DNA from: Caecitellus pseudoparvulus
Lineage: Eukaryota; Protista; Bigyra: Bicosoecida
Assembly: GCA_965644315.1 (NCBI GenBank)
Contig: CBFFRQ010000018.1
Span: 1-64,000 of the forward strand
Length of the DNA stretch: 64,000 nt
Direction: 5' to 3'
Below the pieces are notes generated by a model that made no database searches, was not told the DNA's origin, and worked only from the letters and a program-made list of their open reading frames with translations. A program made the position numbers and the translations under genes. This document shows positions 1,751-22,570 of this stretch, piece after piece. Every line of letters starts with the position of its first letter. The first letter of the stretch is position 1.

Positions 1751-4678
1751 CTTTCCAAATGTCAAGCTAATCACAAGTTGTGAAGTGCTAACATTGCCTA
1801 ATCCAGGCGCTCGTGCACCCAAGTGTGGTGTTGCACAGTGCTTGCTGGTTGGGTGGTGCGCACCGGGGCGGGGTAGTGCGAATTCCGCACACCATCGCAC
1901 CGTGGCTCCCAGTTTGCGCCCTCGGTCGGGGCATGCACCTGGGATCGACATCAAAAGCATCATTGACAAGCATCATGAACGCCCAAGTGGATCAAGTCCT
2001 GGGGGTCCTCTTCGTGGAGGGGTGCCTGAAGCGCAAGCAAGTGCTCGGCCCCAGAACAGGTGTCTTCACTGACATGCCACGTCGGGGTGCCGCACGCACC
2101 TTCGAGCTTGGAGGACCCCTGCCCAAGACTGATCATGATAGTTCATCTTCGGCACGGGACATGTGGCTCGAGGTCTATGGGGAAGCCGCCGAACGGCTGA
2201 TCCCAGGGCTGAGTGCGGAATTCGGCAACGCCAATGCGGCCCTGCGCCAGGGACCCACCGGATCGCCAACCATCCTCGTCACGCTCGGAAGTGAGGGTGA
2301 TTCACCAACAGTGGCACGTCAACTTCGCATTCTTGCTGCTCAAGAGGACGACTTCGCCATTCGAGTCGGCCAAGGTGGGTTCGTCGCCGTGGCCTACACC
2401 AACACCAAGCAGTTCGCATCGGCGAAGGCGAAAGTGAAGGTGAAGGCCCACCCCACCGCCATCCAAGTGGCCCACCAAGTGACCAAGGAAGCAACCGAAA
2501 TCGCCTGCCAGTCAGGTGATGTTGCCAAGGTCATGTGCCTCGTTAGGTCCCACTTCGACCATGGCCCCGTGCCAGCCCAAGCCGTCCGTCCCAGTGTCAG
2601 ACAATCCGTCCCCTCCGAGGGTGATGCACCTGTCGACACCAAGACACCATCGACCTGGACTGACACTCAGCTCGACAAGGCACCGAAGAAGAAGAAGACC
2701 CGTCGAGGCAAGCGAGGAAAGGGCAAGTCAGCCGGACGATCCCTCACCTTCGAGGACGTCTTCATCAAGAACGTCCGGCCACCTGCACCTCGACCAACCT
2801 CACCACCTGCCACCCAAGGCTCACCCAAAGATACCGTCACCACCCCTGTGGTGCATGCCATGTTGCCTTCATCAAGGGTGCAGCGGGGCGTCGACCGCAA
2901 GTGGCCGTCCCCCACCCCGTCGGGCGAGGCAAGCCCCGAGGTGCACCGGTATCGGCCGTCTGCAGCAGCAGCATGGGAGGTGATCACAAGGGTGGTGCCT
3001 CTTCATGACAGTGTGCGGACACCCGAGCACCTGGCCGAGTACCCCATCAAGCCTGGCCCTCTGGCCGACCTGCTGTCATCGACCCACGTGTACTCTAACG
3101 TGGGGGGGCGGGCCTGTGTCCAGGCCTGTCTCGAGACGGCAGCAGGGGAGAGGGTCTTCGAGGCTGGGGACCTCCTCCTACTCCAGCATGCAGCCACCAT
3201 CAACGCTGCCCAGCTTGCCTTCAAGCACATGGTCAGGCAGCTGGAGGGGGTGGTCAGTGACTCGTCCAGCTCGGACATCATGGACGTCGGCCAGAAGCCA
3301 CCCTCCCCCTTCCGCTCAGACGGGCAACGGGTGGCCGTCTTCCGCAACATGCTGCACCAGCACTCGCCGGATGACACCTTCCTGGCCCCAGGTACACCAC
3401 CAGTCCTGCTTCCCGGCCTGCACCTGCTCATCGACCGCATCAACCAAGGGTACCGTGCCCCAGCCGGGCATGATGACCTTGGCCAGGCCGGCGTCGACCC
3501 CAGCCAGGTTGATGAAGAGGGTGACCAAGAGGGGCACCTCGACGGAGTGCTGTATGCCTTCGCACTTCGAGAGGTGTGGACCGACAACACGGCCCATCTG
3601 CAGCTCATCCTCGTCGACCATGATCGAGGCAAGCTGGTGCTGTGGAACCCCGACATCCCTGACCTCCATGACGAGCTGCCCCTGCACAAGTGCATGACCC
3701 GGCTGGCAGCCGAAGGCATCAACGTCTTGTACCGGATCTGGACCACACCCGAGGCGGGCAGTCCAGCACCCTTCCGGGACAGGCTTCGAGGGGCACTCCA
3801 GTCTCTCCGAGATGACTTCCCCCCCCTGCCTCACAAGGCCACCGACGGCACCGTGCACCCCCAGACCCTCATCGCTGGCAAGGGCACAAGGGTGGCCATG
3901 CCTCATGGGCGGATGACCCGACAGCAGGCCGCCACCCTGGAGGCTGAGGTCAAGGACCCCCTCAAGCGGCTGGTGCCTGAAGACGGCGAGGGTCGCCTGC
4001 CCAAGGTCAAGGATGTGCCCCACATCTCGATCGGGCAGATGGGTGGACGCCTGATGTAAGTCACCTGTGGGGGCATACTCCCTGTGCCACACATGACTGA
4101 AGCTTTGTGTCGCGACCGACGCACATAGCTGACATCGGACATTGGAAAGTCCAACCCAACCTCACCATCACCAACCCAACATCGATACCAACACATCAGG
4201 ACTCGGCTCAGTGGAAGGGGAAGGCACTTGCAGCAAGATCTGTGAGGCCGCCCCCAAACCTGAGCCGAAGGGACAGCCGGGCTGGGTCGTGTGCTTGCAT
4301 CTCAGCAACACCCAGTCCGTGTCGAGTCCATATCCTCCAGCCCACACCGCCACCCAAGCCAAGCAAGTCGGGTCTCCACCCCTGGACATCGGACCGAGAC
4401 GGACGAGACTGGACTGGACGGACAAGACAAGAGTGGACCGAGACCTGGACCTACACCTCAAGACCATCCCACCGGGGCGGGCGCTGAAGCGCCAAGACAG
4501 ACGGCGACTTATACAACGGACACGAGTCTGTGCTAGTCGCAAAGCCGTGCAAGCGGTGCCGTCGTGGTGTCTGTGTCACTGCATTCTGTTGTGGCGCAGG
4601 TGGCACCACATGTCCAAGCCCAAGCTGTACCATGATGTAGCCTGCATGGAGGCAATCTGCAATGCATTGAGTAGCTAA
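1751..4678 (+). mobile_element. Telomeric non-LTR retroelement family A (non-autonomous; no endonuclease or RT)
   Basis: 5' UTR similar to B, including an identical block (TGCTAACATTGCCTAATCCAGGCGCTCGTGCACCCAAGTGTGGTGTTGCACAGTG). ORF homologous to the B N-terminus. 3' end TGCAATGCATTGAGTAG-CTAA runs into telomere repeats. Confidence 0.88.
1975..4059 (+). CDS. Element A protein, 694 aa; homologue of the N-terminal (ORF1-like / putative cysteine protease) region of B
   Basis: ATG at 1975 (MNAQVDQVLG) aligns with B MEAKTSQVLG. Shared blocks: FTDMPRRGAARTFELGG, CVQACLETAAG, PPVLLPGLH, DHDRG..VLWNP. Uninterrupted; stops where the APE domain begins in B. Confidence 0.88.
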   Translation: MNAQVDQVLGVLFVEGCLKRKQVLGPRTGVFTDMPRRGAARTFELGGPLPKTDHDSSSSARDMWLEVYGEAAERLIPGLSAEFGNANAALRQGPTGSPTILVTLGSEGDSPTVARQLRILAAQEDDFAIRVGQGGFVAVAYTNTKQFASAKAKVKVKAHPTAIQVAHQVTKEATEIACQSGDVAKVMCLVRSHFDHGPVPAQAVRPSVRQSVPSEGDAPVDTKTPSTWTDTQLDKAPKKKKTRRGKRGKGKSAGRSLTFEDVFIKNVRPPAPRPTSPPATQGSPKDTVTTPVVHAMLPSSRVQRGVDRKWPSPTPSGEASPEVHRYRPSAAAAWEVITRVVPLHDSVRTPEHLAEYPIKPGPLADLLSSTHVYSNVGGRACVQACLETAAGERVFEAGDLLLLQHAATINAAQLAFKHMVRQLEGVVSDSSSSDIMDVGQKPPSPFRSDGQRVAVFRNMLHQHSPDDTFLAPGTPPVLLPGLHLLIDRINQGYRAPAGHDDLGQAGVDPSQVDEEGDQEGHLDGVLYAFALREVWTDNTAHLQLILVDHDRGKLVLWNPDIPDLHDELPLHKCMTRLAAEGINVLYRIWTTPEAGSPAPFRDRLRGALQSLRDDFPPLPHKATDGTVHPQTLIAGKGTRVAMPHGRMTRQQAATLEAEVKDPLKRLVPEDGEGRLPKVKDVPHISIGQMGGRLM

Positions 4679-4690
4679 CCCTAACCCTAA
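4675..4690 (+). repeat. Interstitial telomere remnant at the A/B1 junction
   Basis: CTAACCCTAACCCTAA. Confidence 0.95.
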
Positions 4691-7600
4691 TGTCAACCTA
4701 ATCATAGGTTGTGCATTGCTAACATTGCCTAATCCAGGCGCTCGTGCACCCAAGTGTGGTGTTGCACAGTGTTTGGGTTGGCAGTGCAGCGCGCGGGTGG
4801 CAGCTGTGCGAATTCCGCACGCCATCACACCAGCGCAAGCAGTGTGCACTCCCCGCGGGAGTCTGCACCTGTGGATACCTGCATCACGTTCCATCATCAC
4901 CATGGAAGCCAAGACAAGTCAAGTACTGGGTGCGCTCTTCGTGGATAAGTGCATTGCTGCGCGAGCAATGCGTGGACCAAGAACGGGCGGATTTACTGAC
5001 ATGCCGCGCCGAGGCGCTGCACGAACGTTTGAGCTTGGCGGAGTGCCCATCGACGAAGACCCTTCAACATCTTCATCAACAATCCGAGATTCCTGGCTTC
5101 AAGTCTTTGGTGAGGCGGCGGAGGCCCAGTTCCCTGGCATCTGTGCGGAAGTTGGGCGTGGTGCAGCGGCGTTGCGCCGCCCACAAGGAACCCCAGCTGC
5201 CCTGCTAGTCTCGCTTGGCGGAGGAAGTGCCAGCGCAGAGCTGGCACGGAGCATACGCGAAGCAGCAGCACGTGAGGACGACTTCACTGTGCGCCTTGGA
5301 CGAGGTGGCTTCATGGCTGTGGTGTTTCCAGACACACGCCAGTTCGCCAACGCCAAGGCCAAGGTGCAGGTGACTGCCTCGGCCCCAGTGCTCAAGGCGG
5401 CCCACCTCCTGATGCCCCAAGCCACGAAGATTGCTGTTGAGACAGGTGACGTAAGCTCAGTCGTGAAGCTCGTCAAGTCCCATCTTCATGGCCACTCGCC
5501 GCCTGCTCGTCAAGACCGCCACTTCGTCCGACATTCCGTCCCCGTCAAGGGCGACGCCGCTGTCGACAAAGTGAACCGGCCTGCTCCACCCAAGCCTGCC
5601 CACACTGCTCATCATGTGCCAGGCAAGCGCAAGAAGGTACGCCGAGGACAGCGCTCGAAGTCTTCGAAGCCATCCAATGTCGTGCCAGGACGAACGTTCG
5701 CTGACCTCTTCAAGACTCCCCCGTCCGAGCCCTCAGCAAGCCGACGCCCCTTCCGTACAGTGATGCCTGCCCCCACCACTTCACCGCGACCCACGACGGA
5801 GGTTGTCCTTCCATCCTCTCGGGTGCGCACTGGGGCTAGCACGCGATGGGACCAACCGCCAACTGCTGAGCAAGACTCAAAGCAACAACACCATGCCCAG
5901 TCAGCAGCCCAACCCGCTCAGGCACCCAGCACTGAAACGGCCAGGACTTTGTTTGTTGGTGCAGACAAGCCAAGTGTCAAGTCTGAACCGCAGGCATGCG
6001 ACACGTTGGACATGCCAGACTCATCACCACCCTCCCCAGGAATCGTTGAAGTCGTTCGGATGGAAGACTGCAGCAGGCTCCCAGCGGATCTCCCAAGACA
6101 CAGAATCCCAACTGGGTCCCCGCTGGAACGCCTCCTTGCATCAAGCACAGTAGCTGGCAACCTTTCCGAGCGCCACTGTGTGCAAGCATGTCTGGAAACT
6201 GCAGCGGGTGCTCAGGTGCTGGAGCCCGAGGATCTTCTCCTCCTCCAACACGCAGCCACAGTGGAAGCAGCGCAACGCGCATTCAAAACCCTGCGCAAGC
6301 GAGAGGCTGCAGCCCTGTCTGACTCGTCCAGCTCGGATGTCCAGTGCCTGGCGCCGACTAGAGGCGTGGCCTCTTCGGATCCCGAGGACCAGCTAGCAGC
6401 ATTGGCCCGACTGCTGTACCGGTTCACTCCGGATGACTCGCTGCTGCAGCCCACGTCTCCCCCAGTGCTTCTGCCAGGTCTCCACATGCTGCTGAACCGT
6501 ATCAATGTTGGGCATGAAGACCTGCATGGCGGGAACAAGCACCATGGCGGTGTGAGTCCACAAGCGGTTGTGGACGAGGACGAGCAAGAGCGGTACTTCC
6601 ATGGCGTCCACTTCGCCTTTGCTCTCCACCGGCCCCAACAAGTCCACGCTGCCCACCTGACTCTCATACTGGCTGACCATGACCGTGGAGTCCTTGTCCT
6701 ATGGAACCCAGACACACCTGATGCATGCACTGAGCTGCCCATGCACAAGTGTATGCAGAGACTCTACGATGACGCAGTGGACATGGTGTACAGAGTGTCG
6801 GCAACCCCCCACACCGGGAACCCAGTCCCTCTTTGTGACAGGATCCGAGACATATTCCACAGTCTGCGCCAGTCCTTCCCTCCCCTTCCCTTTGTGGACC
6901 ACGAGGGGGCTGTCCACCTCAAGACGTTCATCGCGGGGAAGTCTACCAGGGTCACCATTCAAGCAGGCCGGCTCACTCGAGCACAGGCCTCTGCAGCAAG
7001 TGAGGCAAAGGAGCGCGACCCTCTGTTCCAACTCATTCCATCAGACGAGGATGCCATGCCCCCGAGGTGGGAGCAGAGTCCGTACACACCAGTGGGAAAG
7101 TCCAGCAGCATCCCAGTGTCGCTCGTGTCATGGAATGTTGCTGGGTCGTGTGGCCGCAACCTGCACAAGGTTCTCATCTGCGCCCAGTCTGTGTGCCTCC
7201 GTTCATCCAGACTGGTCCTCTGCCTCACGGAACCTGGTGGCCACGGCACACTTGACTCGGAAGTCATGGGGCTCCAATGTTTCAGGCCCTCCCCCAGATC
7301 GTCCACCCGGTCGCAGTGAAGTTGCGCTTCTGGTCGACCGTCGTCTACGCGCCACGCAGATAGTCAACCTTGGACTCGATGGGCGCTGTGTGGTCGCCTG
7401 CTCCATCCCCATGAAGCCAAGGCCCCTTGCTGTTATCGCGGCCTACGTGCCCAACTGGCACACGGCCCAGCGGAAGAAGCCACTTGCAGACCCAGACACT
7501 AAGCTGCCCCACCGCCAAGAGGTCTGGGAGCAGCTGGCCAACGCTGTAAAAAGTCTGCGAACCACGCATATGATCTCCCTCATGGGGGACCTCAACTGCC

Positions 7601-10600
7601 ATCCTGGTGATGGCGGACTTCCTGCTTGGGACGCAACATGCTGGCAGAACCGGACCGATGTCGCTGACCCCATCCCAGATGTCAAGGAGCTCGCAATCGT
7701 GTGCGAGCATGGTAACCTCGAGCCAGCCGGGCTCGCCGGGTGCTCCACCCATGCCACGAACGGCAGAGCCCTGGACCACATCCTTGTCTGCCCACTGCTC
7801 AAGGCCCAGGTCAAGGTGCCACACACAGTGACGACAACCTTCTCCAGTGCAGGCAAGCAGAATCCGGAGAAGTCGATCCTGAGTGACCACTACCTCCTGT
7901 CAGCAACAGTCCAAGTTGTGATCCCTCCACGGCCAAAGGGTGCCCGGCATGCCCACTCTTCCTTCTCTGTGCCGCCATGGTGGGCATCATCTACACGTGA
8001 AGGGCGCAGGGCACAGACCTTGCACAGGCGGCTGCTTGACTCATCCATCACTGGTGCCGCATCCCCCCACCCGGCCAAGCTGCAGACACCCTGCTGTCAG
8101 GCCTGGATGATTTGGTTGCCGACGCTGCCCGACAAGCCCATGCCAAGTGCAAAGTTGTGGCACCCCCGCTGCTTCAGGCCCTTGCCGACATTCGCACCCT
8201 CAGCTCTGTCAAGAAGCGGATGACAGTGAGGACAGGGCGGATCAAGAAGCAACTCCGCAAGCTTCATCGACGCCGGCACCTTCTTCAGCATAGCCAGTCA
8301 CCCCATGCCCCAGCTGACCTACGTTGTGCGGATGAACGAAAGCACATGCTCATGGAGGACCTTGCTGCCACCCATGTTGAAAGGAAGAAGGCGATGCGCA
8401 AGTGTACTCGGCTGGTTGCCAAGAAACACAAGGCCGCCATGTTCCAAGTCCAGCAGCGCATCCGGGACCTTGCCCGGCTTGACCCCTTCACTGCTCACCT
8501 GCATGTGCGGAAGCTGTCCGGCAGAAGGAGGAAGGGCACTTCGTCGTCCATCCAGTCAGTCATGGACGACAGCGGCACCCTCATCACAGACCCATCACAA
8601 GTGCGGGCTGTGGTCAGGGACCAGATGGCCCAGATCATCAGCCCCCCTCCACGGCAAGTCGTGTCCCTGAAGTTCGGACTGGGCCGGCTGCTCCCATCGG
8701 CCCCGACCCACATGTCGACTGAAGCCGCCTGGACCCCGAGCGTGGACCATATCCTGAAGAAGATCCAGTCCCTGAGCCTCCACCGCAACCCTGGCACAGG
8801 GCACTACCAGGCTGAGCATGTCAAGTATGCCAGCGAGGACTTCCGGAAGAGGTACGCTGCCGCTCTTCAACAGGCCATCAGCACCGGTTCATGTCCAAGT
8901 CAGTACCACAGTGGGGTGGGGACACTCATCCCCAAGACCGCCAGCCAGGCCGGGAGGGTGCAGACATACAGGCTCATTGTCTGCCGTCCCCCCAAGCCAA
9001 GCTCTTCTTCTCGGTCGTGGCCTCATGTGTCGAAGACTGGGTGCAGCACTGGATCTCACATGAGCAGGCAGGCTTCACCCATGCCCGCAACACCCACGAG
9101 CAGATCCTGGCCTTGCAGGAGGTGTCCACTGCCCACCTGCGCGCCAAGCCCACTGCCAGTGTCCTTGTCCTTTTCGTGGACTTCAAGAGTGCCTTTGACA
9201 CTGTCAGCCACGAAGCGATACTCGAGATCCTCGAGTCAGCAAGCCTCCCACAGCCCCTGCTCAGCTGCGTGAAGGACTACATGCAGCGCGCCACAGTGGC
9301 CATTCACACTGGCCATGGTCTTTGCGACCCCCTCCCAGTCACCAACGGGGTCCCCCAGGGTGGCGCACTGTCGCCTCTGTTGTTCAAGGTGGCTATTGAT
9401 GTGCTCTCTCAACGCCTGAGAGAGCTGCCAAGTCAGGGAGTGTCAGGGGCAGGAGTGCCGACACCCCGCGGCCACGTCACGCATACGCTCTATGCGGACG
9501 ATCTTGCTTGCCTCGCCACCACCCCTGCTGCCCTCCATCGGATGTTCCTTGAAGTCAAGGCCCTGGGCAGCCGGGTGGGCTTGGCCATCAACCCGCGCAA
9601 GTCCGGGGTCATGGTCCTCACCGGGGCGCAACAGGTCAATGGGGTGTCAGCCACGGAGCGGCGGAAGCTCATCTGGCGGTCCCGCTGGCTGAGGTCAGGG
9701 CAGTCCATGAAGGTCAAGGGGACACCCATCCAACGCACGAGCACCTACTCGTACTTGGGTGTCCCCCTGTCTGAAACTGTCAGCCGAACCCGACTGCTTG
9801 CCACGAGGCAGGCCACTCTGTCCTGCACTCGGGCTGGGTTCGGCTGCGGTGCCCTCCTCAGTAGTGCGTGGCTGAGTCCGATCCTGAAGCAGCGGATCGG
9901 CACTGCCTCCATCAACAGTGCCGCCGACTACATCTTGGCGTCCCAGGTCAGCAACTCGGTGCTACCTTTGCGGGACGTCGATCGTGGACTTGCCATCGCC
10001 TTCAGCAAGGCCCAGCTGGGGATGCAAAGCTCGCTAGCACGTATGCACAACTATGCAAAGCTTGCTGTGTGCGGCGTCTTGCCAACACACATCCGGGCGA
10101 CGAAACTCCGCAGCATTATCTTCATGAAGCTGCTGAAGAATGTCCAAGTGCCCACCCCCATGGCCAAGGCGCTGTCCATCAGCCTGCGCCAAGCCCTGGA
10201 CCTGCTGCCCTCCCCCCTGGACATGGCCAGCATCTTCCTGGCCAATGTCCGCCTCGACAGGCCAGGCGCTGGAGGCATCCCAGATCCATGGGCCTTACAC
10301 GGTCTACTCGACCTCTGGCTCCTTGGATGCCTCCCTGACCGCGCACGCCTGGAGGCTGTGTGCCTGGAGCCGCCGCCTGACTCTGCCCCAGACACACACG
10401 GGGTCGACATCACCGCTGGGATGGACCCCGCCCCCCCCAAGATCCAGCTGCTTGGACTCGCGGCAGCGGAGTCCTCAGATCTGTCGGCTGCCCCCCAGTT
10501 CCCGGACACCACCCCCTGGGCCACTCGGCAACGCGTCGTCGCCTCCTTCCTTCATGTGGCCCAGACGGTCAAGTGCGGTGCAGTTGGCTACACTCCCACG

Positions 10601-12441: not shown

Positions 12442-15400
12442 TGTCAACCTAATCATAGGTTGTGCATTGCTAACATTGCCTAATCCAGGCGCTCGTGCAC
12501 CCAAGTGTGGTGTTGCACAGTGTTTGGGTTGGCAGTGCAGCGCGCGGGTGGCAGCTGTGCGAATTCCGCACGCCATCACACCAGCGCAAGCAGTGTGCAC
12601 TCCCCGCGGGAGTCTGCACCTGTGGATACCTGCATCACGTTCCATCATCACCATGGAAGCCAAGACAAGTCAAGTACTGGGTGCGCTCTTCGTGGATAAG
12701 TGCATTGCTGCGCGAGCAATGCGTGGACCAAGAACGGGCGGATTTACTGACATGCCGCGCCGAGGCGCTGCACGAACGTTTGAGCTTGGCGGAGTGCCCA
12801 TCGACGAAGACCCTTCAACATCTTCATCAACAATCCGAGATTCCTGGCTTCAAGTCTTTGGTGAGGCGGCGGAGGCCCAGTTCCCTGGCATCTGTGCGGA
12901 AGTTGGGCGTGGTGCAGCGGCGTTGCGCCGCCCACAAGGAACCCCAGCTGCCCTGCTAGTCTCGCTTGGCGGAGGAAGTGCCAGCGCAGAGCTGGCACGG
13001 AGCATACGCGAAGCAGCAGCACGTGAGGACGACTTCACTGTGCGCCTTGGACGAGGTGGCTTCATGGCTGTGGTGTTTCCAGACACACGCCAGTTCGCCA
13101 ACGCCAAGGCCAAGGTGCAGGTGACTGCCTCGGCCCCAGTGCTCAAGGCGGCCCACCTCCTGATGCCCCAAGCCACGAAGATTGCTGTTGAGACAGGTGA
13201 CGTAAGCTCAGTCGTGAAGCTCGTCAAGTCCCATCTTCATGGCCACTCGCCGCCTGCTCGTCAAGACCGCCACTTCGTCCGACATTCCGTCCCCGTCAAG
13301 GGCGACGCCGCTGTCGACAAAGTGAACCGGCCTGCTCCACCCAAGCCTGCCCACACTGCTCATCATGTGCCAGGCAAGCGCAAGAAGGTACGCCGAGGAC
13401 AGCGCTCGAAGTCTTCGAAGCCATCCAATGTCGTGCCAGGACGAACGTTCGCTGACCTCTTCAAGACTCCCCCGTCCGAGCCCTCAGCAAGCCGACGCCC
13501 CTTCCGTACAGTGATGCCTGCCCCCACCACTTCACCGCGACCCACGACGGAGGTTGTCCTTCCATCCTCTCGGGTGCGCACTGGGGCTAGCACGCGATGG
13601 GACCAACCGCCAACTGCTGAGCAAGACTCAAAGCAACAACACCATGCCCAGTCAGCAGCCCAACCCGCTCAGGCACCCAGCACTGAAACGGCCAGGACTT
13701 TGTTTGTTGGTGCAGACAAGCCAAGTGTCAAGTCTGAACCGCAGGCATGCGACACGTTGGACATGCCAGACTCATCACCACCCTCCCCAGGAATCGTTGA
13801 AGTCGTTCGGATGGAAGACTGCAGCAGGCTCCCAGCGGATCTCCCAAGACACAGAATCCCAACTGGGTCCCCGCTGGAACGCCTCCTTGCATCAAGCACA
13901 GTAGCTGGCAACCTTTCCGAGCGCCACTGTGTGCAAGCATGTCTGGAAACTGCAGCGGGTGCTCAGGTGCTGGAGCCCGAGGATCTTCTCCTCCTCCAAC
14001 ACGCAGCCACAGTGGAAGCAGCGCAACGCGCATTCAAAACCCTGCGCAAGCGAGAGGCTGCAGCCCTGTCTGACTCGTCCAGCTCGGATGTCCAGTGCCT
14101 GGCGCCGACTAGAGGCGTGGCCTCTTCGGATCCCGAGGACCAGCTAGCAGCATTGGCCCGACTGCTGTACCGGTTCACTCCGGATGACTCGCTGCTGCAG
14201 CCCACGTCTCCCCCAGTGCTTCTGCCAGGTCTCCACATGCTGCTGAACCGTATCAATGTTGGGCATGAAGACCTGCATGGCGGGAACAAGCACCATGGCG
14301 GTGTGAGTCCACAAGCGGTTGTGGACGAGGACGAGCAAGAGCGGTACTTCCATGGCGTCCACTTCGCCTTTGCTCTCCACCGGCCCCAACAAGTCCACGC
14401 TGCCCACCTGACTCTCATACTGGCTGACCATGACCGTGGAGTCCTTGTCCTATGGAACCCAGACACACCTGATGCATGCACTGAGCTGCCCATGCACAAG
14501 TGTATGCAGAGACTCTACGATGACGCAGTGGACATGGTGTACAGAGTGTCGGCAACCCCCACACCGGGAACCCAGTCCCTCTTTGTGACAGGATCCGAGA
14601 CATATTCCACAGTCTGCGCCAGTCCTTCCCTCCCCTTCCCTTTGTGGACCACGAGGGGGCTGTCCACCTCAAGACGTTCATCGCGGGGAAGTCTACCAGG
14701 GTCACCATTCAAGCAGGCCGGCTCACTCGAGCACAGGCCTCTGCAGCAAGTGAGGCAAAGGAGCGCGACCCTCTGTTCCAACTCATTCCATCAGACGAGG
14801 ATGCCATGCCCCCGAGGTGGGAGCAGAGTCCGTACACACCAGTGGGAAAGTCCAGCAGCATCCCAGTGTCGCTCGTGTCATGGAATGTTGCTGGGTCGTG
14901 TGGCCGCAACCTGCACAAGGTTCTCATCTGCGCCCAGTCTGTGTGCCTCCGTTCATCCAGACTGGTCCTCTGCCTCACGGAACCTGGTGGCCACGGCACA
15001 CTTGACTCGGAAGTCATGGGGCTCCAATGTTTCAGGCCCTCCCCCCCAGATCGTCCACCCGGTCGCAGTGAAGTTGCGCTTCTGGTCGACCGTCGTCTAC
15101 GCGCCACGCAGATAGTCAACCTTGGACTCGATGGGCGCTGTGTGGTCGCCTGCTCCATCCCCATGAAGCCAAGGCCCCTTGCTGTTATCGCGGCCTACGT
15201 GCCCAACTGGCACACGGCCCAGCGGAAGAAGCCACTTGCAGACCCAGACACTAAGCTGCCCCACCGCCAAGAGGTCTGGGAGCAGCTGGCCAACGCTGTA
15301 AAAAGTCTGCGAACCACGCATATGATCTCCCTCATGGGGGACCTCAACTGCCATCCTGGTGATGGCGGACTTCCTGCTTGGGACGCAACATGCTGGCAGA

Positions 15401-18400
15401 ACCGGACCGATGTCGCTGACCCCATCCCAGATGTCAAGGAGCTCGCAATCGTGTGCGAGCATGGTAACCTCGAGCCAGCCGGGCTCGCCGGGTGCTCCAC
15501 CCATGCCACGAACGGCAGAGCCCTGGACCACATCCTTGTCTGCCCACTGCTCAAGGCCCAGGTCAAGGTGCCACACACAGTGACGACAACCTTCTCCAGT
15601 GCAGGCAAGCAGAATCCGGAGAAGTCGATCCTGAGTGACCACTACCTCCTGTCAGCAACAGTCCAAGTTGTGATCCCTCCACGGCCAAAGGGTGCCCGGC
15701 ATGCCCACTCTTCCTTCTCTGTGCCGCCATGGTGGGCATCATCTACACGTGAAGGGCGCAGGGCACAGACCTTGCACAGGCGGCTGCTTGACTCATCCAT
15801 CACTGGTGCCGCATCCCCCCCACCCGGCCAAGCTGCAGACACCCTGCTGTCAGGCCTGGATGATTTGGTTGCCGACGCTGCCCGACAAGCCCATGCCAAG
15901 TGCAAAGTTGTGGCACCCCCGCTGCTTCAGGCCCTTGCCGACATTCGCACCCTCAGCTCTGTCAAGAAGCGGATGACAGTGAGGACAGGGCGGATCAAGA
16001 AGCAACTCCGCAAGCTTCATCGACGCCGGCACCTTCTTCAGCATAGCCAGTCACCCCATGCCCCAGCTGACCTACGTTGTGCGGATGAACGAAAGCACAT
16101 GCTCATGGAGGACCTTGCTGCCACCCATGTTGAAAGGAAGAAGGCGATGCGCAAGTGTACTCGGCTGGTTGCCAAGAAACACAAGGCCGCCATGTTCCAA
16201 GTCCAGCAGCGCATCCGGGACCTTGCCCGGCTTGACCCCTTCACTGCTCACCTGCATGTGCGGAAGCTGTCCGGCAGAAGGAGGAAGGGCACTTCGTCGT
16301 CCATCCAGTCAGTCATGGACGACAGCGGCACCCTCATCACAGACCCATCACAAGTGCGGGCTGTGGTCAGGGACCAGATGGCCCAGATCATCAGCCCCCT
16401 CCACGGCAAGTCGTGTCCCTGAAGTTCGGACTGGGCCGGCTGCTCCCATCGGCCCCGACCCACATGTCGACTGAAGCCGCCTGGACCCCGAGCGTGGACC
16501 ATATCCTGAAGAAGATCCAGTCCCTGAGCCTCCACCGCAACCCTGGCACAGGGCACTACCAGGCTGAGCATGTCAAGTATGCCAGCGAGGACTTCCGGAA
16601 GAGGTACGCTGCCGCTCTTCAACAGGCCATCAGCACCGGTTCATGTCCAAGTCAGTACCACAGTGGGGTGGGGACACTCATCCCCAAGACCGCCAGCCAG
16701 GCCGGGAGGGTGCAGACATACAGGCTCATTGTCTGCCGTCCCCCCCAAGCCAAGCTCTTCTTCTCGGTCGTGGCCTCATGTGTCGAAGACTGGGTGCAGC
16801 ACTGGATCTCACATGAGCAGGCAGGCTTCACCCATGCCCGCAACACCCACGAGCAGATCCTGGCCTTGCAGGAGGTGTCCACTGCCCACCTGCGCGCCAA
16901 GCCCACTGCCAGTGTCCTTGTCCTTTTCGTGGACTTCAAGAGTGCCTTTGACACTGTCAGCCACGAAGCGATACTCGAGATCCTCGAGTCAGCAAGCCTC
17001 CCACAGCCCCTGCTCAGCTGCGTGAAGGACTACATGCAGCGCGCCACAGTGGCCATTCACACTGGCCATGGTCTTTGCGACCCCCTCCCAGTCACCAACG
17101 GGGTCCCCCAGGGTGGCGCACTGTCGCCTCTGTTGTTCAAGGTGGCTATTGATGTGCTCTCTCAACGCCTGAGAGAGCTGCCAAGTCAGGGAGTGTCAGG
17201 GGCAGGAGTGCCGACACCCCGCGGCCACGTCACGCATACGCTCTATGCGGACGATCTTGCTTGCCTCGCCACCACCCCTGCTGCCCTCCATCGGATGTTC
17301 CTTGAAGTCAAGGCCCTGGGCAGCCGGGTGGGCTTGGCCATCAACCCGCGCAAGTCCGGGGTCATGGTCCTCACCGGGGCGCAACAGGTCAATGGGGTGT
17401 CAGCCACGGAGCGGCGGAAGCTCATCTGGCGGTCCCGCTGGCTGAGGTCAGGGCAGTCCATGAAGGTCAAGGGGACACCCATCCAACGCACGAGCACCTA
17501 CTCGTACTTGGGTGTCCCCCTGTCTGAAACTGTCAGCCGAACCCGACTGCTTGCCACGAGGCAGGCCACTCTGTCCTGCACTCGGGCTGGGTTCGGCTGC
17601 GGTGCCCTCCTCAGTAGTGCGTGGCTGAGTCCGATCCTGAAGCAGCGGATCGGCACTGCCTCCATCAACAGTGCCGCCGACTACATCTTGGCGTCCCAGG
17701 TCAGCAACTCGGTGCTACCTTTGCGGGACGTCGATCGTGGACTTGCCATCGCCTTCAGCAAGGCCCAGCTGGGGATGCAAAGCTCGCTAGCACGTATGCA
17801 CAACTATGCAAAGCTTGCTGTGTGCGGCGTCTTGCCAACACACATCCGGGCGACGAAACTCCGCAGCATTATCTTCATGAAGCTGCTGAAGAATGTCCAA
17901 GTGCCCACCCCCATGGCCAAGGCGCTGTCCATCAGCCTGCGCCAAGCCCTGGACCTGCTGCCCTCCCCCCTGGACATGGCCAGCATCTTCCTGGCCAATG
18001 TCCGCCTCGACAGGCCAGGCGCTGGAGGCATCCCAGATCCATGGGCCTTACACGGTCTACTCGACCTCTGGCTCCTTGGATGCCTCCCTGACCGCGCACG
18101 CCTGGAGGCTGTGTGCCTGGAGCCGCCGCCTGACTCTGCCCCAGACACACACGGGGTCGACATCACCGCTGGGATGGACCCCGCCCCCCCCAAGATCCAG
18201 CTGCTTGGACTCGCGGCAGCGGAGTCCTCAGATCTGTCGGCTGCCCCCCAGTTCCCGGACACCACCCCCTGGGCCACTCGGCAACGCGTCGTCGCCTCCT
18301 TCCTTCATGTGGCCCAGACGGTCAAGTGCGGTGCAGTTGGCTACACTCCCACGGGGGAGATGAAGGCCACCAGGCGTCCGAAGGAGTACCACATCGGTGT

Positions 18401-20196
18401 GGGTGCTCGCTTCTTCGCCTGGCTGCACCCGATCCCTTCCTCTGTGAACCCAGTCTTCTGGGTCCACGAAGGCGATCAGGAGAGACGTGTGAAGGTGCAC
18501 CTGTGGCAGACGCTTCAAGTGTTCAACGGGGATGACACCCCGACACTGTTCAGCGCCTGCCCCCTGTGCCACAGCGTCTCCTGGTGCAGCCTGCAGGAGC
18601 ACGTCCTTCTTGACTGCCCCCACCACGCCCTGGTCCCTGCGAGAAGGTCCGCCCTGTCAGAGGTGCGGAACCTCCTGTCCAGATCCAATGATGCAGTGAG
18701 GGGGGTCGCCAACTGCCAGTACCTCGAAGTACCCCCCCCACTGCTGGATGCTGTTGTCCACGCCGACGAAGGCCGCTTGTTGGGCCGCCCGTGTCGCCTG
18801 CTGCTGCTGCGACTGCTGCTGTGCGGCCAGTGGCCCCATCGGTGGGGCCAGCCTCCGGCACAACAGCCCTGGAGTCCCGAGGCAGCCGCGGTCCTGAGTA
18901 ACCCCCATGTCACTCTCCGCGGCTCCTCGGGTCCACTCCGCCCCCCCAAGTACTGGCGCGAGGCCCTGGTAGCTGCCACGGGCCTCGCGGTATCTGCGTG
19001 GGACGCGGTGGTGACGTGCATGCTCAGCCTTACCTCTCGTGCCGACCGTCACATCCAGAGGCACGCCCGGTACCTCTGGTGGGCGGCGCATGGACGAACG
19101 TGTCCTCTCCCAGGTTACTCGGCTCCTGATCCGAGTACTGTGAGGAAGCATGTGCGGGACGTGAAGACGCGGCGCTTCGAGCGCACTTACTTCCCTGTCA
19201 AGTCCCCTCGTCGGCCGCCTCGCTCCTTCACGAGGCAGGCCACCTTGCTCGACTTCGGGCTGGCACGGCCGGAAGTCCACGAGGAACCTCCGGCACCGTC
19301 GATTTCATCCTCGGCGTCGTCCTCTGGGTCGTCCTTGAAGTGTCCATCTGACTCTGAGTAGCGGGCGATGTGTGTAGAGCGCGGCGCGAGGCGGTGCAAG
19401 CTTACGGCGTGGCGTGGTGACAACCACGGTCGTGGCTGAGCGAAGTGCGAGAGCAGGGTGATGTGATGTCCTTGATGAATGACGGAACCTGCGGAAAGTT
19501 GGAAGATGATGAAGTGAATATGTCCAGTATACTTACATGATGGCTCGGGGTCCACGTGCAGCCCGAGATAGATTCCTGTGACGGGGCGCGCGGAATTTGG
19601 CAGGGTGAACACGCGGGCGCGCGGGGCAACGTCGCAGGCGGGGCGCACAGGTCCTCAGGGCCTTGAGTGATGAGTCAGCTGGATTATCTGTGAAGAAAAG
19701 GAGGTGTTCTTGGTGTTCTTGGTGCGCGGGTGGCGTTGTTCCGGCGGTGCGCGCTGCTACCACCGGCGTGGTGCAGTGCAACACCGTCGTGAAACGCCAC
19801 CCGAAGGCGGCCACTGCGGCTCAGGACAGCGCGCAGTGGCCCCAGGCACACGTGCAGTGCCTGGCAAGGGCCAGGAGAAGCGGGGGGTTTCTGAATTATG
19901 AAGCGAAGTGTGGACTGGAACGAAGCAAGAGTGGGCCCGGCCCCCTCTGGCTCAGCCGACTGAGCCGAGAGGGCGCGGGCGGGGCAGTTCGACACGTATG
20001 GGCGGGCGCGGGCGCGCCCTAGCAAGCGGCGGCTCATACAACGGACGTATGTCCGTGATGGCTGCAGACCCACGAGAGTGGGAGCCGCTGTAGCGCTCCT
20101 GGTGTGCCTTGTGCACAGCAGCGAACGCTACATGTGATGCCCAAGCTGTATCGCGTGCAAGCGTGAAGGCGACATGCAATGCATTGAATGAACTAA
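12442..20196 (+). mobile_element. Full-length telomeric non-LTR retrotransposon family B, copy 2
   Basis: 7755-bp near-identical tandem copy; the differences I can see from copy 1 are C-run lengths. Confidence 0.96.
12653..19361 (+). CDS. B2 polyprotein (N-terminal region + APE + RT + CCHC); two apparent frameshifts in C homopolymers
   Basis: Track ORFs 12467-15115, 14644-16422 and 16413-19361. Breaks at C-runs near 14556 and 16395 are absent from copy 1. Confidence 0.92.
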
Positions 20197-20224
20197 CCCC
20201 CTAACCCTAACCTACCCTAACCCT
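20193..20224 (+). repeat. Interstitial degenerate telomere remnant
   Basis: CTAACCCCCTAACCCTAACCTACCCTAACCCT. Confidence 0.93.
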
Positions 20225-20726
20225 CTTGCGTGTCCATGAAGTGTGCGGCGCGCTCTGTGACGTGGGCAGTGGTGAATGCGCGGGTGCTGGTGTGCGCGGT
20301 CAAGTTCCGCACCACGCACCCGGCCGAATACCCGCGCAGAGCCGCAGCATACACCCCATGAAGGGCTCAGGGAGGCTCCCGAGAGCCACAGATAACGTGG
20401 GATGTGATTTTGGATTATGGTCTCTTGTCCAGAGTGCTCGGATGCCTGGGTGTGCTCTGGTGTGCCCCAGGTGTCTGGCGCTGGCGGAGCAAGGGATGAA
20501 GTGAAGCGGAGGAGGGCCAAGATGATGAATTGGAGCGGGCAGGGACCTGCCCTAGCAAGCGACGACATATATAACGGGCGCAAGCCTGTGTTTGTTGCGT
20601 ATCCGCGCCAAGCGGTAGCCGCTGTGGCGTCCTACATGTGCAGAGGTGCATTGTGGGGCGCCCGTGTGACGCTCCAGCTGTACAGTGTCAAGCGACGCTG
20701 AGGTGAAATGCATTGTGAATTGCTAA
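20225..20726 (+). mobile_element. 5'-truncated family C element (3' UTR fragment)
   Basis: Diverged match to ~22060-22570; ends AAATGCATTGTGAATTG-CTAA, followed by CCC. Confidence 0.88.
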
Positions 20727-20729
20727 CCC

Positions 20730-21003
20730 AAGCAGGAGTGGACCCGGCCCCCTCTGGCTCAGCCGACTGAGCCGAGAGGGCGCGGGCGGGGCAGTTCGAC
20801 ACGTATGGGCGGGCGCGGGCGCGCCCTAGCAAGCGGCGGCTCATACAACGGACGTATGTCCGTGATGGCTGCAGACCCACGAGAGTGGGAGCCGCTGTAG
20901 CGCTCCTGGTGTGCCTTGTGCACAGCAGCGAGCGCTACATGTGATGCCCAAGCTGTATCGCGTGCAAGCGTGAAGGCGACATGCAATGCATTAAATGAGC
21001 TAA
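20730..21003 (+). mobile_element. 5'-truncated family B element (last ~270 nt of the 3' UTR)
   Basis: Near-identical to ~12168-12441 with a few substitutions; ends in CTAA, followed by CCCTAAC. Confidence 0.92.
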
Positions 21004-21010
21004 CCCTAAC

Positions 21011-21745
21011 ATCCTGCTGCACTGCACCCACCACGAACTCACCCTAGCACGCCAACACACGATGGCCAAGTTCAAGGAACTGGCCAACAGGTCAGCTGTG
21101 CCCGAGTCCGTGGCGGGCCAGGCGGAGTGCCTGCCCATCCCCCCCAAGATCCGTGAAGCCCTTCTCCATGCTCCCGACCCAGAGCCGCGAAGACTGCGGG
21201 ACCTCGAGGTCCTCCACAGGCTCTTGCTCTGCGGGCAGTGGCCCCACCGGTGGGGGCTGGCCGACGACGAGCAGCCCGTCACCATGAGAGAGGCTGCCGT
21301 CCTCTCCTACCCCCACCTCGTCCACCGTGCTGGCCCCACCCGTGTCCGTGCCCCAACTGCATGGCGAGACATCCTGCGAGGCGCGGTCGAGTTCACAGCA
21401 AAGGCGTGGCGGGTGACAGTCACTTACATGATGCGTATGACTGATGCCCACCACCTTGCTGTCCAGAGGCATGCAGAGTACCTGTGGTGGGCAGTACATG
21501 GGCGCGGGGCGCCGCTGCCTGGCCGCACGCAGCCAGTGCGGTCAGCGGCCACGCGGCACACGCGCAGGCCACGCACTCGCCGCAGGGAACGCACCTTCTT
21601 CCCTGCCAAGGCGGGCCAAGTGCCGTCCACGGAGGGCAAGGTGCAGAGGACGCTGCAGCACTTCATGGGGCCACCACCAGCCCATCCAGACGCTGACGAT
21701 GACGGGGAGGGTCTCGGTAGTTCCTGTGAAGAGAGCGAAGAGTGA
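21011..21745 (+). pseudogene. C-terminal fragment of the family C polyprotein
   Basis: ILLHCTHH...RLLLCGQWPHRWG...EAAVLS.PH...QRHAEYLWWAVHGR...ERTFFP matches B VLLDCPHH...RLLLCGQWPHRWG...QRHARYLWWAAHGR...ERTYFP. Confidence 0.9.
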
Positions 21746-22570
21746 GGCGGAACGCAGGCGTACGTGCATGGCGTGGAACAGCCACGCTTGTGGCTGCGCC
21801 TACCCTCCACCCGCGTCCTGACGTGATGAACCTGTGTGAAGCGTGGTGATAACCACGGTAGCAAGAAACAGTCGACCAAGACCTTACCTTTTATCCCCTT
21901 TATAGCCTGCGAGTAGCGGTGGAGTGAGCGGGAGCGTGCCTCGGGCCGCGGTGCGTGTGCAGCCGCAGTGCTGCACGGCCACGGCCCGGCTGGCGGCTGA
22001 CGACGAAGCAAGCCCACTCACCGTGAAACCAGGGCGTGACGGGTTGCAGAAGAAGGTCTTCTTCCTTCCTGTGTGCCTCTTCATGCGCGCGGTGCGCTCT
22101 GTGGTGCGGGCGCATGTGTGCGCGCGGGTGCTGGTGTGCGCGGTCAATTTCCGCACCACGCACCCGGCCGAGTTCCCGCGCAGAGGCGGAGCACACACCT
22201 CATGGAAGGCGCAGAGAGGCCTATGAGGCCCACAGAGGAGGTGGGTGAGGAATTTGGATTATGATCTGTTGTCAAGACTGCGCGGATGCCTGGGTGTGCT
22301 CTGGTGAGCCCCAGGTGTCTGGCGCGAGAGGAGCAAGGGATGAAGTGAAGCGGAGGAGGGACAAGAAGATGAATTGGAGCGGGCAGGGACCTGCCCTAGC
22401 AAGCGGCGGCAGATAAAACGGGCGCAAGCCTGTGTTTGTTGCGAATCCGCGCCAAGCGGTAGCCGCTGTGGCGTCCTACATGTGCAGAGGTGCATTGTGG
22501 GGCGCCTGTGTGACGCTCAAGCTGTACAGTGTCAAGCGACGCTGAGGTGAAATGCATTGTGAATTGCTAA
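21011..22570 (+). mobile_element. 5'-truncated family C element (ORF C-terminus + 3' UTR)
   Basis: Begins directly after CTAACCCTAAC; encodes a homologue of the B C-terminus; ends AATGCATTGTGAATTG-CTAA. Confidence 0.9.

Follow-up and report, generated by a model that had tools for sequence, protein, structure and literature searches.

The window analysed here, a 64,000-nt stretch at a contig end of Caecitellus pseudoparvulus, begins with a perfect (CCCTAA)n tract on the + strand (1-1745, by direct reading), in which the G-rich strand runs 5′ to 3′ toward the contig start. Between this telomere and the host DNA lie six + strand units in the order A, B, B, C fragment, B fragment, C, all with their 5′ ends pointing to the chromosome end. 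Self-BLAST and junction reading thereby bear out the polarised stack described in the initial annotation. Unit A (1751-4678, 2,928 nt), delimited by self-BLAST and by the homology of its ORF to B, is non-autonomous and carries the N-terminal domain only. An internal telomere tract of two CCCTAA repeats (4679-4690) separates it from B1 (4691-12441, 7,751 nt), a broken-frame copy of the autonomous element that is 99.9% identical to B2. The autonomous element B2 (12442-20196, 7,755 nt), which carries the Pfam domains Exo_endo_phos and RVT_1, directly abuts the CTAA of B1, with no nucleotide in between (12441/12442). Downstream of B2, a degenerate telomere-like tract read directly from the sequence (20197-20226) is followed by the 3′ 482 nt of a 5′-truncated C (~20245-20726), which ends in GCTAA and is 89% identical to 22089-22570, and by the last 274 nt of a 5′-truncated B (20730-21003), which is 98% identical to the B 3′ ends and is preceded only by CCC. 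A single CCCTAA (21004-21009) then leads into a full unit C (21010-22570, 1,561 nt), a non-autonomous element with the C-terminal domain only, as judged by ORF homology to B. The units are linked through 0-30 nt of telomere-like sequence, and their 3′ ends read ATGCATTG(N)CTAA, that is, ATGCATT(G/A)N3-9CTAA. A weak 22-nt match to the terminal motif (22643-22665, + strand, E 0.036) may be what remains of an earlier, now degenerate 3′ terminus, and no further element copy was found across the remainder of the window. The pattern is far beyond chance, and the same architecture is seen at every other contig end examined and in a metagenomic relative.

B, a non-LTR retrotransposon of the APE type, has a single ~2,300-aa ORF that comprises an N-domain, an APE, an RT, a CCHC motif and a C-domain. 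In B2, the N-domain frame spans 12467-15115, the APE ~14878-15642 (Pfam Exo_endo_phos) and the RT ~16680-17519 (Pfam RVT_1), while the CCHC-like motif and the C-terminal domain extend to ~19361 and are followed by the 3′ UTR (all + strand). B1 and B2 appear to be multi-ORF because the lengths of C/G homopolymers differ between otherwise identical copies, and such runs hold all of the indel differences among five B copies. In the sister B copies the frame stays open throughout, at 2,151-2,336 aa; one of them (L006:1665-8591:-) is a single 2,309-aa open frame with the same domains as B2. Moreover, the sister lineages of B in the same genome (B′, D and others) share this polyprotein plan, many lineages carry uninterrupted frames of 2,100-2,390 aa, and intact long ORFs are present in at least eight.

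The B RT matches RVT_1 with E values of 6e-31 to 9e-32. Its closest solved relatives are human L1 ORF2p (E 2.5e-21), whose 78-bit match ranks below those of thousands of unnamed proteins, and R2 (3e-16). The APE scores above the Pfam cut-off for Exo_endo_phos (26.6-44.7 bits), and its catalytic set (E46, Y118, D166/N168, H170, D228 and S264-D265-H266) is invariant in six lineages with identities of just 35-68%, with the N of the SWNV motif kept in five of the six. This APE is strongly divergent, and none of the solved EEP nucleases matches it by sequence. Self-BLAST revealed no LTR or TIR within the units, and the truncated A, B and C copies all keep the 3′ end. The LINE-type RT, the N-terminal EEP endonuclease with an intact catalytic set and the variable 5′ truncation identify the element as a LINE.

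What do the two shorter units encode? Unit A consists of a 5′ leader (1751-1974), an ORF of 694 aa from the first Met (1975-4059) and a 3′ UTR (4060-4678), and its protein shares 42% identity with the initial ~700 aa of the B polyprotein. The ORF of C (21062-21745, 227 aa) aligns with the final ~210 aa of the B polyprotein at 40% identity (E 1e-40) and with the C-terminus of P0001 at 44%. C had been regarded as a third family; it is indeed a separate unit, and the relationship that had been missed is that it encodes the C-terminal domain of B. Genome-wide, at least 46 full-length A copies (~100% identity), along with 5′-truncated ones, and at least 29 full-length C copies (84-92% identity) were found, all subterminal. 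A and C appear to be two families of protein-coding non-autonomous partners of the B-type LINEs.

The N-domain contains a predicted Josephin/C39-like papain-fold module (2980-3786 in the A ORF, + strand), which is also present in B, B′, D and metagenomic relatives. Sequence-profile searches with this module found no match, and a Pfam search of the N-domain found no L1 ORF1 family. The AF2 model of the module (pLDDT 75, pTM 0.74) has the ataxin-3 Josephin as its top Foldseek match in the PDB (probability 0.98, E 8e-3). In the wide VIA-align search, ~35 of the top 40 chains were papain-fold proteins (PcJOS Z 7.8, Josephin Z 7.6, staphopain C 7.3, ComA C39 7.3), and the Atlas search likewise returned a Josephin (TM 0.51/0.66). 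These scores are moderate, and the agreement of the three structure searches points to a papain-like fold. A papain-type site has its catalytic Cys at a helix N-terminus, its His at a strand start and an Asn/Asp ~15 residues further on. In the module, Cys46 and His206 are invariant in seven lineages and an Asn/Asp lies 16 residues past the His, positions that fit the predicted secondary structure of such a site. The module may possess peptidase or deubiquitinase activity.

A structured RNA module lies at the 3′ end of A (4479-4678), B (12242-12441 and 19997-20196) and C (20527-20726 and 22371-22570), always on the + strand. The RNAalifold consensus comprises 45 pairs, with 97.8% of the cells paired and compensatory changes at 12 pairs; none of 500 shuffles scored as high, and slid windows were only 30-53% paired. 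A 3′ UTR structure of ~190 nt, backed by covariation, is therefore common to all of the families. At the other end, a ~100-nt 5′ leader is almost invariant across A and the autonomous lineages, although their proteins are only 42-59% identical. This leader contains isolated CCTAA/CTAA motifs and no run of variant telomere repeats. A search of 1746-23000 against Rfam yielded no family at E<=1, and hence no ribozyme. The elements terminate in CTAA with no poly(A). The single-ORF autonomous element, the N-terminus-only partner, the structured 3′ UTR and the tail-less CTAA end, which the initial annotation had listed together, are all present.

Mapping across the 30.6-Mb assembly supports the proposal that the elements are dedicated to telomeres. 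The 105 RT matches, representing at least eight lineages, lie on the + strand within 21.2 kb of a contig start or on the - strand within 17.3 kb of a contig end, the lone exception being a reversed fragment on one contig (C23). Apart from this fragment, detectable copies are confined to ~21 kb from the contig ends and point their 5′ ends outward, and scattered interstitial copies in random orientation were not found in the assembly. The architecture recurs on ~60 contig ends, including those of 0.2-1 Mb contigs, and one otherwise plain end carries a single A insertion (C13). The genome also encodes an intact TERT, with Telomerase_RBD and RVT_1 in an open frame, and the elements coexist with TTAGGG telomeres, as the initial annotation had supposed.

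The junctions follow a strict phase. All of the 3′ ends read CTAA and continue into in-phase CCCTAA, and the full-length 5′ ends come after whole telomere repeats, some of these junctions carrying extra A/GAAA nucleotides. Exact A-A and B-B junctions occur, 5′ truncations are many, and the junction tracts differ in length among the ends (0, 7, 12, 13, 24 and 542 nt). The internal telomere tracts have a median of ~12 nt, with 30 of 32 at or below 60 nt, whereas the terminal tracts measure 0.6-1.75 kb; under uniform insertion, the binomial tail for such shortness is 2e-16. Two small contigs (C154 and C196) share near-identical unit order and spacing, and contigs of this type may be haplotigs or duplications, so the copies are not all independent insertions.

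Where do these elements belong? Only 10 of 1.84 billion proteins reach E<=1e-30 against the element; no named family is close, and neither the RT nor the APE has close sequence relatives in this set. A metagenomic relative (59% aa identity), on a contig from an independent project, is flanked on both sides by CCCTAA in the same phase and orientation, and a distant relative, with the same polarity, is found 7.5 kb away from a CCCTAA tract that terminates its contig. An R1-clade plan was rejected on account of the single 2,151-2,336-aa frame in place of two ORFs, the CTAA end without poly(A), and the absence of a zinc-knuckle ORF1 in the Pfam search of B. The CRE group (MoTeR, FoTeR and GilM/T) was rejected because the APE lies N-terminal to the RT, in place of a C-terminal restriction-enzyme-like endonuclease or none at all. 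The Penelope-like elements (Athena/Coprina), which combine a TERT-like RT with a GIY-YIG endonuclease or none and with hammerhead ribozyme motifs, were rejected because of the APE, the LINE-type RT and the lack of an Rfam match. With the one exception noted above, the copies occupy telomeric tracts and keep to one phase and one orientation, which probably places the element among the telomeric-repeat-specific LINEs.

We consider it probable (roughly 0.7) that the array consists of telomere-repeat-specific APE-type LINEs of an undescribed lineage, together with two protein-coding non-autonomous partner families, which integrate by target-primed reverse transcription. In this scheme, the RT would recognise the common 3′ RNA structure, so that A and C could be copied in trans. 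The APE would nick the G-rich strand of the telomeric duplex, at a site suggested by the observed junction phase CTAA|CCCTAA. The exposed …TTAG-3′ end may then pair with the terminal CUAA of the RNA and prime reverse transcription, a pairing that would fix the polarity, with the 5′ end toward the chromosome end and CCCTAA after the 3′ end. Template jumps could generate the exact unit-to-unit junctions and incomplete copying the 5′ truncations, while telomerase would maintain the TTAGGG cap beyond the array, at the very end of the chromosome. The suggestion that the system extends telomeres was not borne out, since the invariance of the APE catalytic residues across six lineages favours conventional insertion into telomeric repeats that depends on the endonuclease. 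The internal tracts are far shorter than the terminal ones and would not be produced by uniform nicking along the telomere; they need a preference for proximal sites, the loss of long-tract arrays, or end-priming on short telomeres. For MoTeR, arrays in which the interstitial tracts are long have been reported to be lost (PMC7367193).

Could the elements instead be added to chromosome ends, in the manner of HeT-A/TART? The CUAA would then pair with the G-strand overhang of a short or uncapped telomere with no nick, telomerase would re-cap the 5′ end, and the elements would serve as a back-up telomere-extension system. The strict 5′-outward polarity suits this reading, as do the internal tracts of mostly 0-60 nt against ~1 kb at the termini, which are expected if only eroded telomeres receive an element. 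The youngest families, A and B (~100% identity), are distal, with the older C copies and fragments proximal, and the N-domain-only partner outnumbers the RT-bearing element, as HeT-A does TART (PMC4700185). However, a dispensable endonuclease would hardly account for APE catalytic residues that are invariant in deep lineages. In addition, most terminal units have an exact full-length 5′ end directly under a 0.6-1.7 kb telomere, an arrangement that insertion into a tract already in place would be expected to leave, and erosion with subsequent healing would not. Telomerase would find almost no seed in the B 5′ end (…GACA-3′ on the G strand), yet an in-phase repeat always adjoins this end. Short interstitial tracts also occur between endonuclease-bearing MoTeRs, where the breakage of longer tracts explains them (PMC7367193). 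We therefore regard end addition as unlikely.

It is still less probable that retrotransposition has ceased or become rare, and that the arrays were spread and homogenised mainly via subtelomeric recombination, break-induced replication or gene conversion. The ~100% identity among the 46 A copies and among the B copies would fit such a history, as would the shared unit order of contigs like C154 and C196, and break-induced replication and D-loop amplification are documented in MoTeR arrays (PMC7367193). Against it, the unit order, the junction tract lengths and the 5′-truncation points vary between ends, which implies that many events took place independently; at least eight lineages have preserved intact long ORFs, and single A insertions stand at otherwise plain ends such as C13. 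The homopolymer indel errors indicate an assembly built from noisy long reads, and its many small repeat-rich contigs might raise the suspicion of collapsed or chimeric repeats at contig ends. An artefact of this kind is very hard to credit for an architecture found on ~60 ends, long contigs included, with the same termini and telomeric flanks on the metagenomic contig from another project.

TRAS/SART are APE-type telomere-repeat-specific LINEs (PMC2868851, PMC7265360), in which 3′ UTR features matter for the correct start of reverse transcription (PMC2868851, PMC7265360, PMC10088271). The elements described here resemble TRAS1/SART1 of Bombyx mori (R1-clade) in the combination of APE and RT, the insertion exclusively into telomeric repeats, where phase and orientation are fixed, the coexistence with telomerase-type repeats and the several lineages per genome. 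They differ in having one ~2,300-aa ORF in place of a gag-like ORF1 and an ORF2, a CTAA 3′ end without poly(A), an N-domain with a predicted papain-like fold, partners with one polyprotein domain each, and a protist host with TTAGGG repeats. MoTeR1/MoTeR2 of Magnaporthe oryzae are arranged head to tail in polarised arrays, interspersed with short telomere tracts, and include a shorter non-autonomous element with the same termini (PMC7367193). As in our arrays, the 5′ ends of MoTeR and of FoTeR (Fusarium) lie nearest the chromosome end in homogeneous or mixed head-to-tail arrays; MoTeR arrays further share half a repeat to ~20 TTAGGG units between elements, telomere-capped 5′-truncated copies, and TTAGGG telomeres with telomerase (PMC7367193, PMC12857005). 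However, MoTeR and FoTeR belong to the CRE group and use a restriction-enzyme-like endonuclease in place of an APE, the MoTeR2 insert has no obvious function while A and C encode conserved polyprotein domains, and the variant-telomere-repeat run of the MoTeR 5′ end has no equivalent here. HeT-A/TART/TAHRE of Drosophila (Jockey clade) likewise form polarised head-to-tail terminal arrays, but in a host without telomerase or telomeric repeats and by bare-end addition with poly(A) tails, in contrast to the TERT, the TTAGGG caps, the conserved APE and the units embedded in telomere repeats found here.

GilM/GilT (Giardia), Zepp (Chlorella), Tx1-1_ACar (Anolis) and Athena (rotifers) are telomeric-repeat retroelements of telomerase-positive hosts, the GilM/T RT being placed in the CRE clade (PMC10088271), and our elements share with them the accumulation in or at telomeric repeats alongside telomerase. 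Athena elements are EN-deficient Penelope-like elements related to TERT, unlike the LINE-like RT described here. GilM/T are not known to carry an endonuclease. Zepp carries poly(A) and nests in its own tails.

The initial annotation had recognised no described family in the combination; this stands insofar as no named family is close, whereas the kind of system is known from MoTeR1/MoTeR2 and TRAS/SART. An independent evolution of the present elements is plausible. Judged by sequence comparison, the lineage and its architecture appear to be new within a known kind of system, and the array is a protist equivalent of TRAS/SART in the silkworm, MoTeR in rice blast and HeT-A/TART in the fly, and not a wholly new kind.

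The left end of contig C18 opens with a perfect terminal telomere, (CCCTAA)n at positions 1–1745, behind which we placed six units of the retroelement families A, B and C by self-comparison and direct reading. Unit A (1751–4678, +) is separated by two CCCTAA repeats from unit B1 (4691–12441, +). Unit B2 (12442–20196, +) is 99.9% identical to B1 by self-comparison, and adjoins it without an intervening telomere repeat. A degenerate telomere tract of 30 nt lies 3′ of B2, followed by a 5′-truncated C (~20245–20726, +), a CCC and the final 274 nt of B (20730–21003, +), a single CCCTAA, and a full C (21010–22570, +). As every unit is on the + strand, the 5′ ends point to the chromosome end, and the 3′ terminus of all units reads ATGCATT(G/A)N3-9CTAA. 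The initial annotation had described this stretch as six head-to-tail units (A, B, B, C-fragment, B-fragment, C) with outward 5′ ends, joined by CTAA or short CCCTAA tracts and ending in a tail-less CTAA, and our reading of the units and their junctions agrees with it. The segment at 22643–22665 may, judging from its sequence, be a weak relic of a further 3′ end; a search of the window found no A-, B- or C-like sequence deeper inside. The first host gene (22877–32191, −) is an intron-less giant ORF of 3,104 aa with RCC1-like, IPT/TIG and TRP-channel-like domains, and no more than ~300 bp separate its end at 22877 from the nearest unit of the array. A second intron-less giant ORF (36371–53545, −; 5,724 aa) likewise lies just inside the array.

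How are these families distributed in the genome? We surveyed the assembly (30.6 Mb, 215 contigs) by DNA search, and found at least 46 full-length copies of A at ~100% identity, at least 29 full-length copies of C at 84–92% identity, and several full-length copies of B together with many 5′-truncated ones and diverged relatives; the survey concerns contig ends rather than finished chromosomes, and the copy counts are lower bounds. At the protein level, the reverse transcriptase (RT) core as query yielded 105 matches, falling into identity classes of 98–100, 84, 74, 71, 66, 64, 45, 37 and 34%, and many of them sit in open frames of 2,000–3,400 aa, indicating that at least eight lineages coexist. 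All of the + strand RT matches are within 21.2 kb of a contig start, and all of the − strand matches are within 17.3 kb of a contig end, with a sole exception on contig C23. The large contigs (0.24–0.98 Mb) bear copies at their ends only, and each of the 11 fetched ends has a terminal telomere followed by co-oriented units, while the order, number and junctions of the units vary from end to end (for example, a single A on contig C13, and A-A-C pieces on contig C12). The expectation that copies would be nearly confined to chromosome ends, in one polarity and in variable number, is thus borne out genome-wide and, for unit number, among the eleven fetched ends. Among the RT matches, the C23 fragment is the only candidate for an interstitial copy. 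All chromosome ends are apparently loaded with elements.

The C23 fragment (10663–11145, −; ~160 aa, 65% identical), on a contig of 58,771 bp, is the only RT fragment in opposite polarity to its nearest end; an inversion or a misjoin may account for it, or it may represent a rare interstitial copy. Contigs C154 and C196 (units at ~4.4–11 kb), as well as other small contigs, have near-identical unit order and spacing, which suggests haplotigs or a recent subtelomere duplication; the independent chromosome ends are therefore fewer than the ~60 element-bearing contig ends. A far more distant subterminal RT lineage occurs at C147:54635–55606 (−) and C42:707737–708708 (−), and on contigs C134, C136, C138, C171 and C151; its RT core is 37% identical, and its frames, which stay open for as much as 3,394 aa, recall the 3,724-aa metagenomic protein P0131. 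In the whole assembly, 60-nt telomere matches number 12,049 on the CCCTAA strand versus 3,713 on the TTAGGG strand, so most telomere-bearing contigs begin with, rather than end in, telomere. This bias probably reflects an orientation habit of the assembler, not biology.

Family B is the autonomous design. Its polyprotein consists of an N-domain of ~730 aa, an APE endonuclease domain (aa 816–1070), a linker of ~350 aa between the APE and the RT, the RT (aa 1417–1696), a CCHC-like motif at ~aa 2043, and a C-terminal domain (~aa 2100–2300); Pfam recognizes Exo_endo_phos for the APE and RVT_1 for the RT. A PDB sequence search with the APE domain alone gave nothing significant. We read the frames from naturally occurring copies only, and obtained uninterrupted frames of 2,309 codons in the sister copy L006:1665–8591 (−; DNA 94% identical), 2,336 codons in the L009 sister copy and 2,227 codons in the L008 sister copy, in accord with the single-ORF autonomous element proposed initially. 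We rejected the reading of B as a multi-ORF element with three to four overlapping ORFs; the frame breaks are homopolymer artefacts, and the differences among five near-identical B copies are almost all in the length of C or G homopolymers.

The ORF of A (694 aa) is 42% identical to the B N-domain, and its stop coincides precisely with the boundary to the APE, which upholds its description as an N-terminus-only partner. The ORF of C (227 aa) is 40% identical to the B C-terminal domain (E 1e-40) and 44% identical to the C-terminus of the metagenomic relative P0001, a relationship that the first description overlooked. The system thus has a single autonomous design, from which two non-autonomous families derive that each still code for one end of the polyprotein. 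Neither the N-domain nor the C ORF has a Pfam match, and a feature-based Atlas search with the C ORF also found none. A further autonomous lineage, D, occupies ~8.9 kb directly under a telomere (L008:1210–10000 plus L009:1–86, equivalent to C67:1210–10086). It has an intact frame of 2,227 aa, and its protein is only 45% identical to that of B; it bears the same near-invariant 5′ leader and the same 3′ terminal motif.

Next, we investigated the N-domain. Sequence searches other than Pfam were also blank, the AF2 model of the whole A ORF (pLDDT 38) was too poor for use, and a feature-based Atlas search with A pointed no more than weakly to Peptidase_C58/C39 (score 0.76). A 269-aa module (window 2980–3786), modelled with seven lineages, reached pLDDT 75 and pTM 0.74. 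A profile search of this module against the PDB gave nothing significant. With the model, Foldseek against the PDB placed the ataxin-3 Josephin domain at the top (prob 0.98); the wide VIA-align search gave PcJOS (Z 7.8), Josephin (Z 7.6), and staphopain C and ComA C39 (both Z 7.3), with a papain fold in about 35 of the 40 top chains; and Atlas gave Josephin (TM 0.51/0.66), then Peptidase_C39_2 and C70. The three structure searches agree, with Josephin first, and point to a papain-fold cysteine peptidase. All seven lineages have an invariant Cys where a helix begins, an invariant His where a strand begins, and an Asn/Asp 16 residues after this His. Since the structure scores are moderate, we regard the Josephin/C39-like papain fold of the modelled module as likely, and its peptidase activity as putative. 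We know of no report of such a fold in a LINE. Exactly between the N-domain and the APE, at the point where the ORF of A comes to its end, there is a conserved (C/P/H)TPVG(K/R) motif (alignment A3 columns ~745–755; window ~4020–4050; L006 ~6177–6200); it is a candidate for the place at which the papain-like module might cleave.

The families also share RNA modules. The final ~190 nt can be aligned among A, B, C, the sister lineages and the metagenomic relative, and the RNAalifold consensus contains 45 pairs, with 97.8% of the cells paired and compensatory double changes in 12 pairs. None of 500 column shuffles reached the observed values, and sliding the partners lowered the pairing to 30–53%; the structured 3′ UTR suspected from the window alone is hence well founded. 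This common structure is likely the handle by which a B-type RT would copy A and C. Among A, B, the lineages B′ and D, and the metagenomic element, the initial ~100 nt of the 5′ leader hardly vary, although the proteins are only 42–59% identical, revealing a strong constraint on the leader at the nucleotide level. The leader shows no covariation, and might serve either as a promoter or as an RNA structure. An Rfam search of the array detected no family, and no HDV-like or hammerhead ribozyme. The leader (window 1751–1850; likewise in the fetched stretches L006, L008, L009, L010 and L019) contains three telomere-like half-sites, AACCTAATC, GCTAACA and GCCTAATCC, which read as TTAGG-like motifs on the cDNA. 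Speculatively, they might aid second-strand priming or bind a telomere-repeat protein.

As judged from database searches, the B protein family is rare: when 1.84 billion representatives were scanned exhaustively with HMMER, only 10 proteins reached E≤1e-30. The closest full-length relative, P0001, is 59% identical; its 7.7-kb contig, from a marine metagenome, has CCCTAA repeats at both ends, and the element on it has the same termini as here, 5′ CTTTCCAAATGTCAACC... and 3′ ...GCAATGCATTGAACAGCTAA. For the distant 3,724-aa relative, the CCCTAA tract at the end of the contig is 7.5 kb away, and the polarity matches that seen here. A word-indexed search with the RT gave 8 matches, and the exhaustive RT search retrieved unnamed proteins only; the cluster names and Pfam architectures of its distant matches provided no clade.

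How do the units enter the telomere? The catalytic residues of the APE do not vary among six lineages with 35–68% identity, which argues for an endonuclease in use. Each unit ends with its 3′ CTAA followed by in-phase CCCTAA, and the full-length 5′ ends come after whole repeats, with an extra A or GAAA at a few 5′ junctions. Exact 3′-to-5′ unit junctions occur between A and A (at a 2,928-nt period) and between B1 and B2, and 5′ truncations leave remnants as short as 29 nt. As read in sequence, these junctions bear the typical marks of sequence-specific insertion by target-primed reverse transcription. We propose that the G-strand of the telomere would be nicked, and that the resulting ...TTAG-3′ end would pair with the CUAA of the element RNA. 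The cDNA synthesis toward the chromosome end would then set the polarity, and template jumping would best explain the exact tandem junctions. TRAS1, by comparison, inserts between T and A in TTAGG, and has an endonuclease that cuts TTAGGG repeats as well (PMC2868851).

Uniform nicking along the telomere does not fit the lengths of the repeat tracts. The tracts proximal to units have a median of ~12 nt, and 30 of 32 are 60 nt or shorter, while the terminal tracts are 0.6–1.75 kb; long internal tracts between units are seen at C5:10582–10994 (~410 bp) and L012:3763–4302 (~540 bp). The short proximal tracts could arise from a preference for the telomere base, from the loss of arrays with interstitial tracts longer than a few repeats, or from HeT-A-like addition onto critically short telomeres. 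MoTeR arrays, which have junction tracts of similar shortness, are documented to be lost in this way (PMC7367193). An intact TERT is present (C77:25738–26142, −, in the fetched stretch L020), with a 1,389-aa open frame containing Telomerase_RBD and RVT_1, and the terminal caps are therefore presumably telomerase products. Together with the 1,745-bp terminal (CCCTAA)n, this gene substantiates the coexistence of the array with TTAGGG telomeres.

Functionally, this is a telomeric-repeat-specific LINE system. It is closest in its working to TRAS/SART, which also combine an APE endonuclease with repeat-phase-specific insertion, and closest in its look to the MoTeR1/MoTeR2 arrays, which share the outward 5′ ends, the head-to-tail order, the short telomere spacers and a partner with common termini. 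The abundance hierarchy recalls HeT-A/TART/TAHRE. With these parallels, the initial suggestion of a categorically new kind of system does not hold. It departs from the defining features of the R1 clade in its single ORF and its lack of poly(A), and unlike the Drosophila system, it coexists with telomerase and telomere repeats. A CRE-type element is ruled out by an APE rather than a REL endonuclease, and a Penelope-like element by the LINE-type RT and the lack of a ribozyme.

Telomere-specialised retrotransposons are known in few lineages: insects, Giardia, Chlorella, ascomycetes, rotifers and an anole. The present system adds a case that looks independent, in a heterotrophic protist that is GC-rich and poor in introns, and is of interest to transposon and telomere specialists. 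By one gene, the nearest named relatives of this host are bicosoecid stramenopiles; its plasma-membrane ATPase shares 51–52% identity with Cafeteria proteins, and 77–100% with unnamed proteins from metagenomes. It stands out by at least eight coexisting lineages with intact single ORFs of ~2,300 aa and by two non-autonomous families that each retain one terminal polyprotein domain, and the covarying 3′ RNA module in all families would be a natural handle for trans-mobilisation. The small genome could make it possible to test what governs the polarity and insertion-site choice of telomere-targeting elements, and whether their effect on telomere maintenance is beneficial or detrimental alongside telomerase. 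In a joint reading, to which we give a chance of about one in five, this APE-LINE clade would act in a telomerase-positive protist as a universal subtelomere builder and a conditional telomere repair system steered by A. Addition would be preferred at telomeres eroded to a few repeats, through CUAA/TTAG pairing with the G-strand end, and the abundant A would steer the units, with its Josephin-like domain acting on ubiquitin-type marks or in polyprotein processing. If this reading is true, it would represent a second, independent mutualism in the style of HeT-A/TART, operating beside telomerase and not replacing it.
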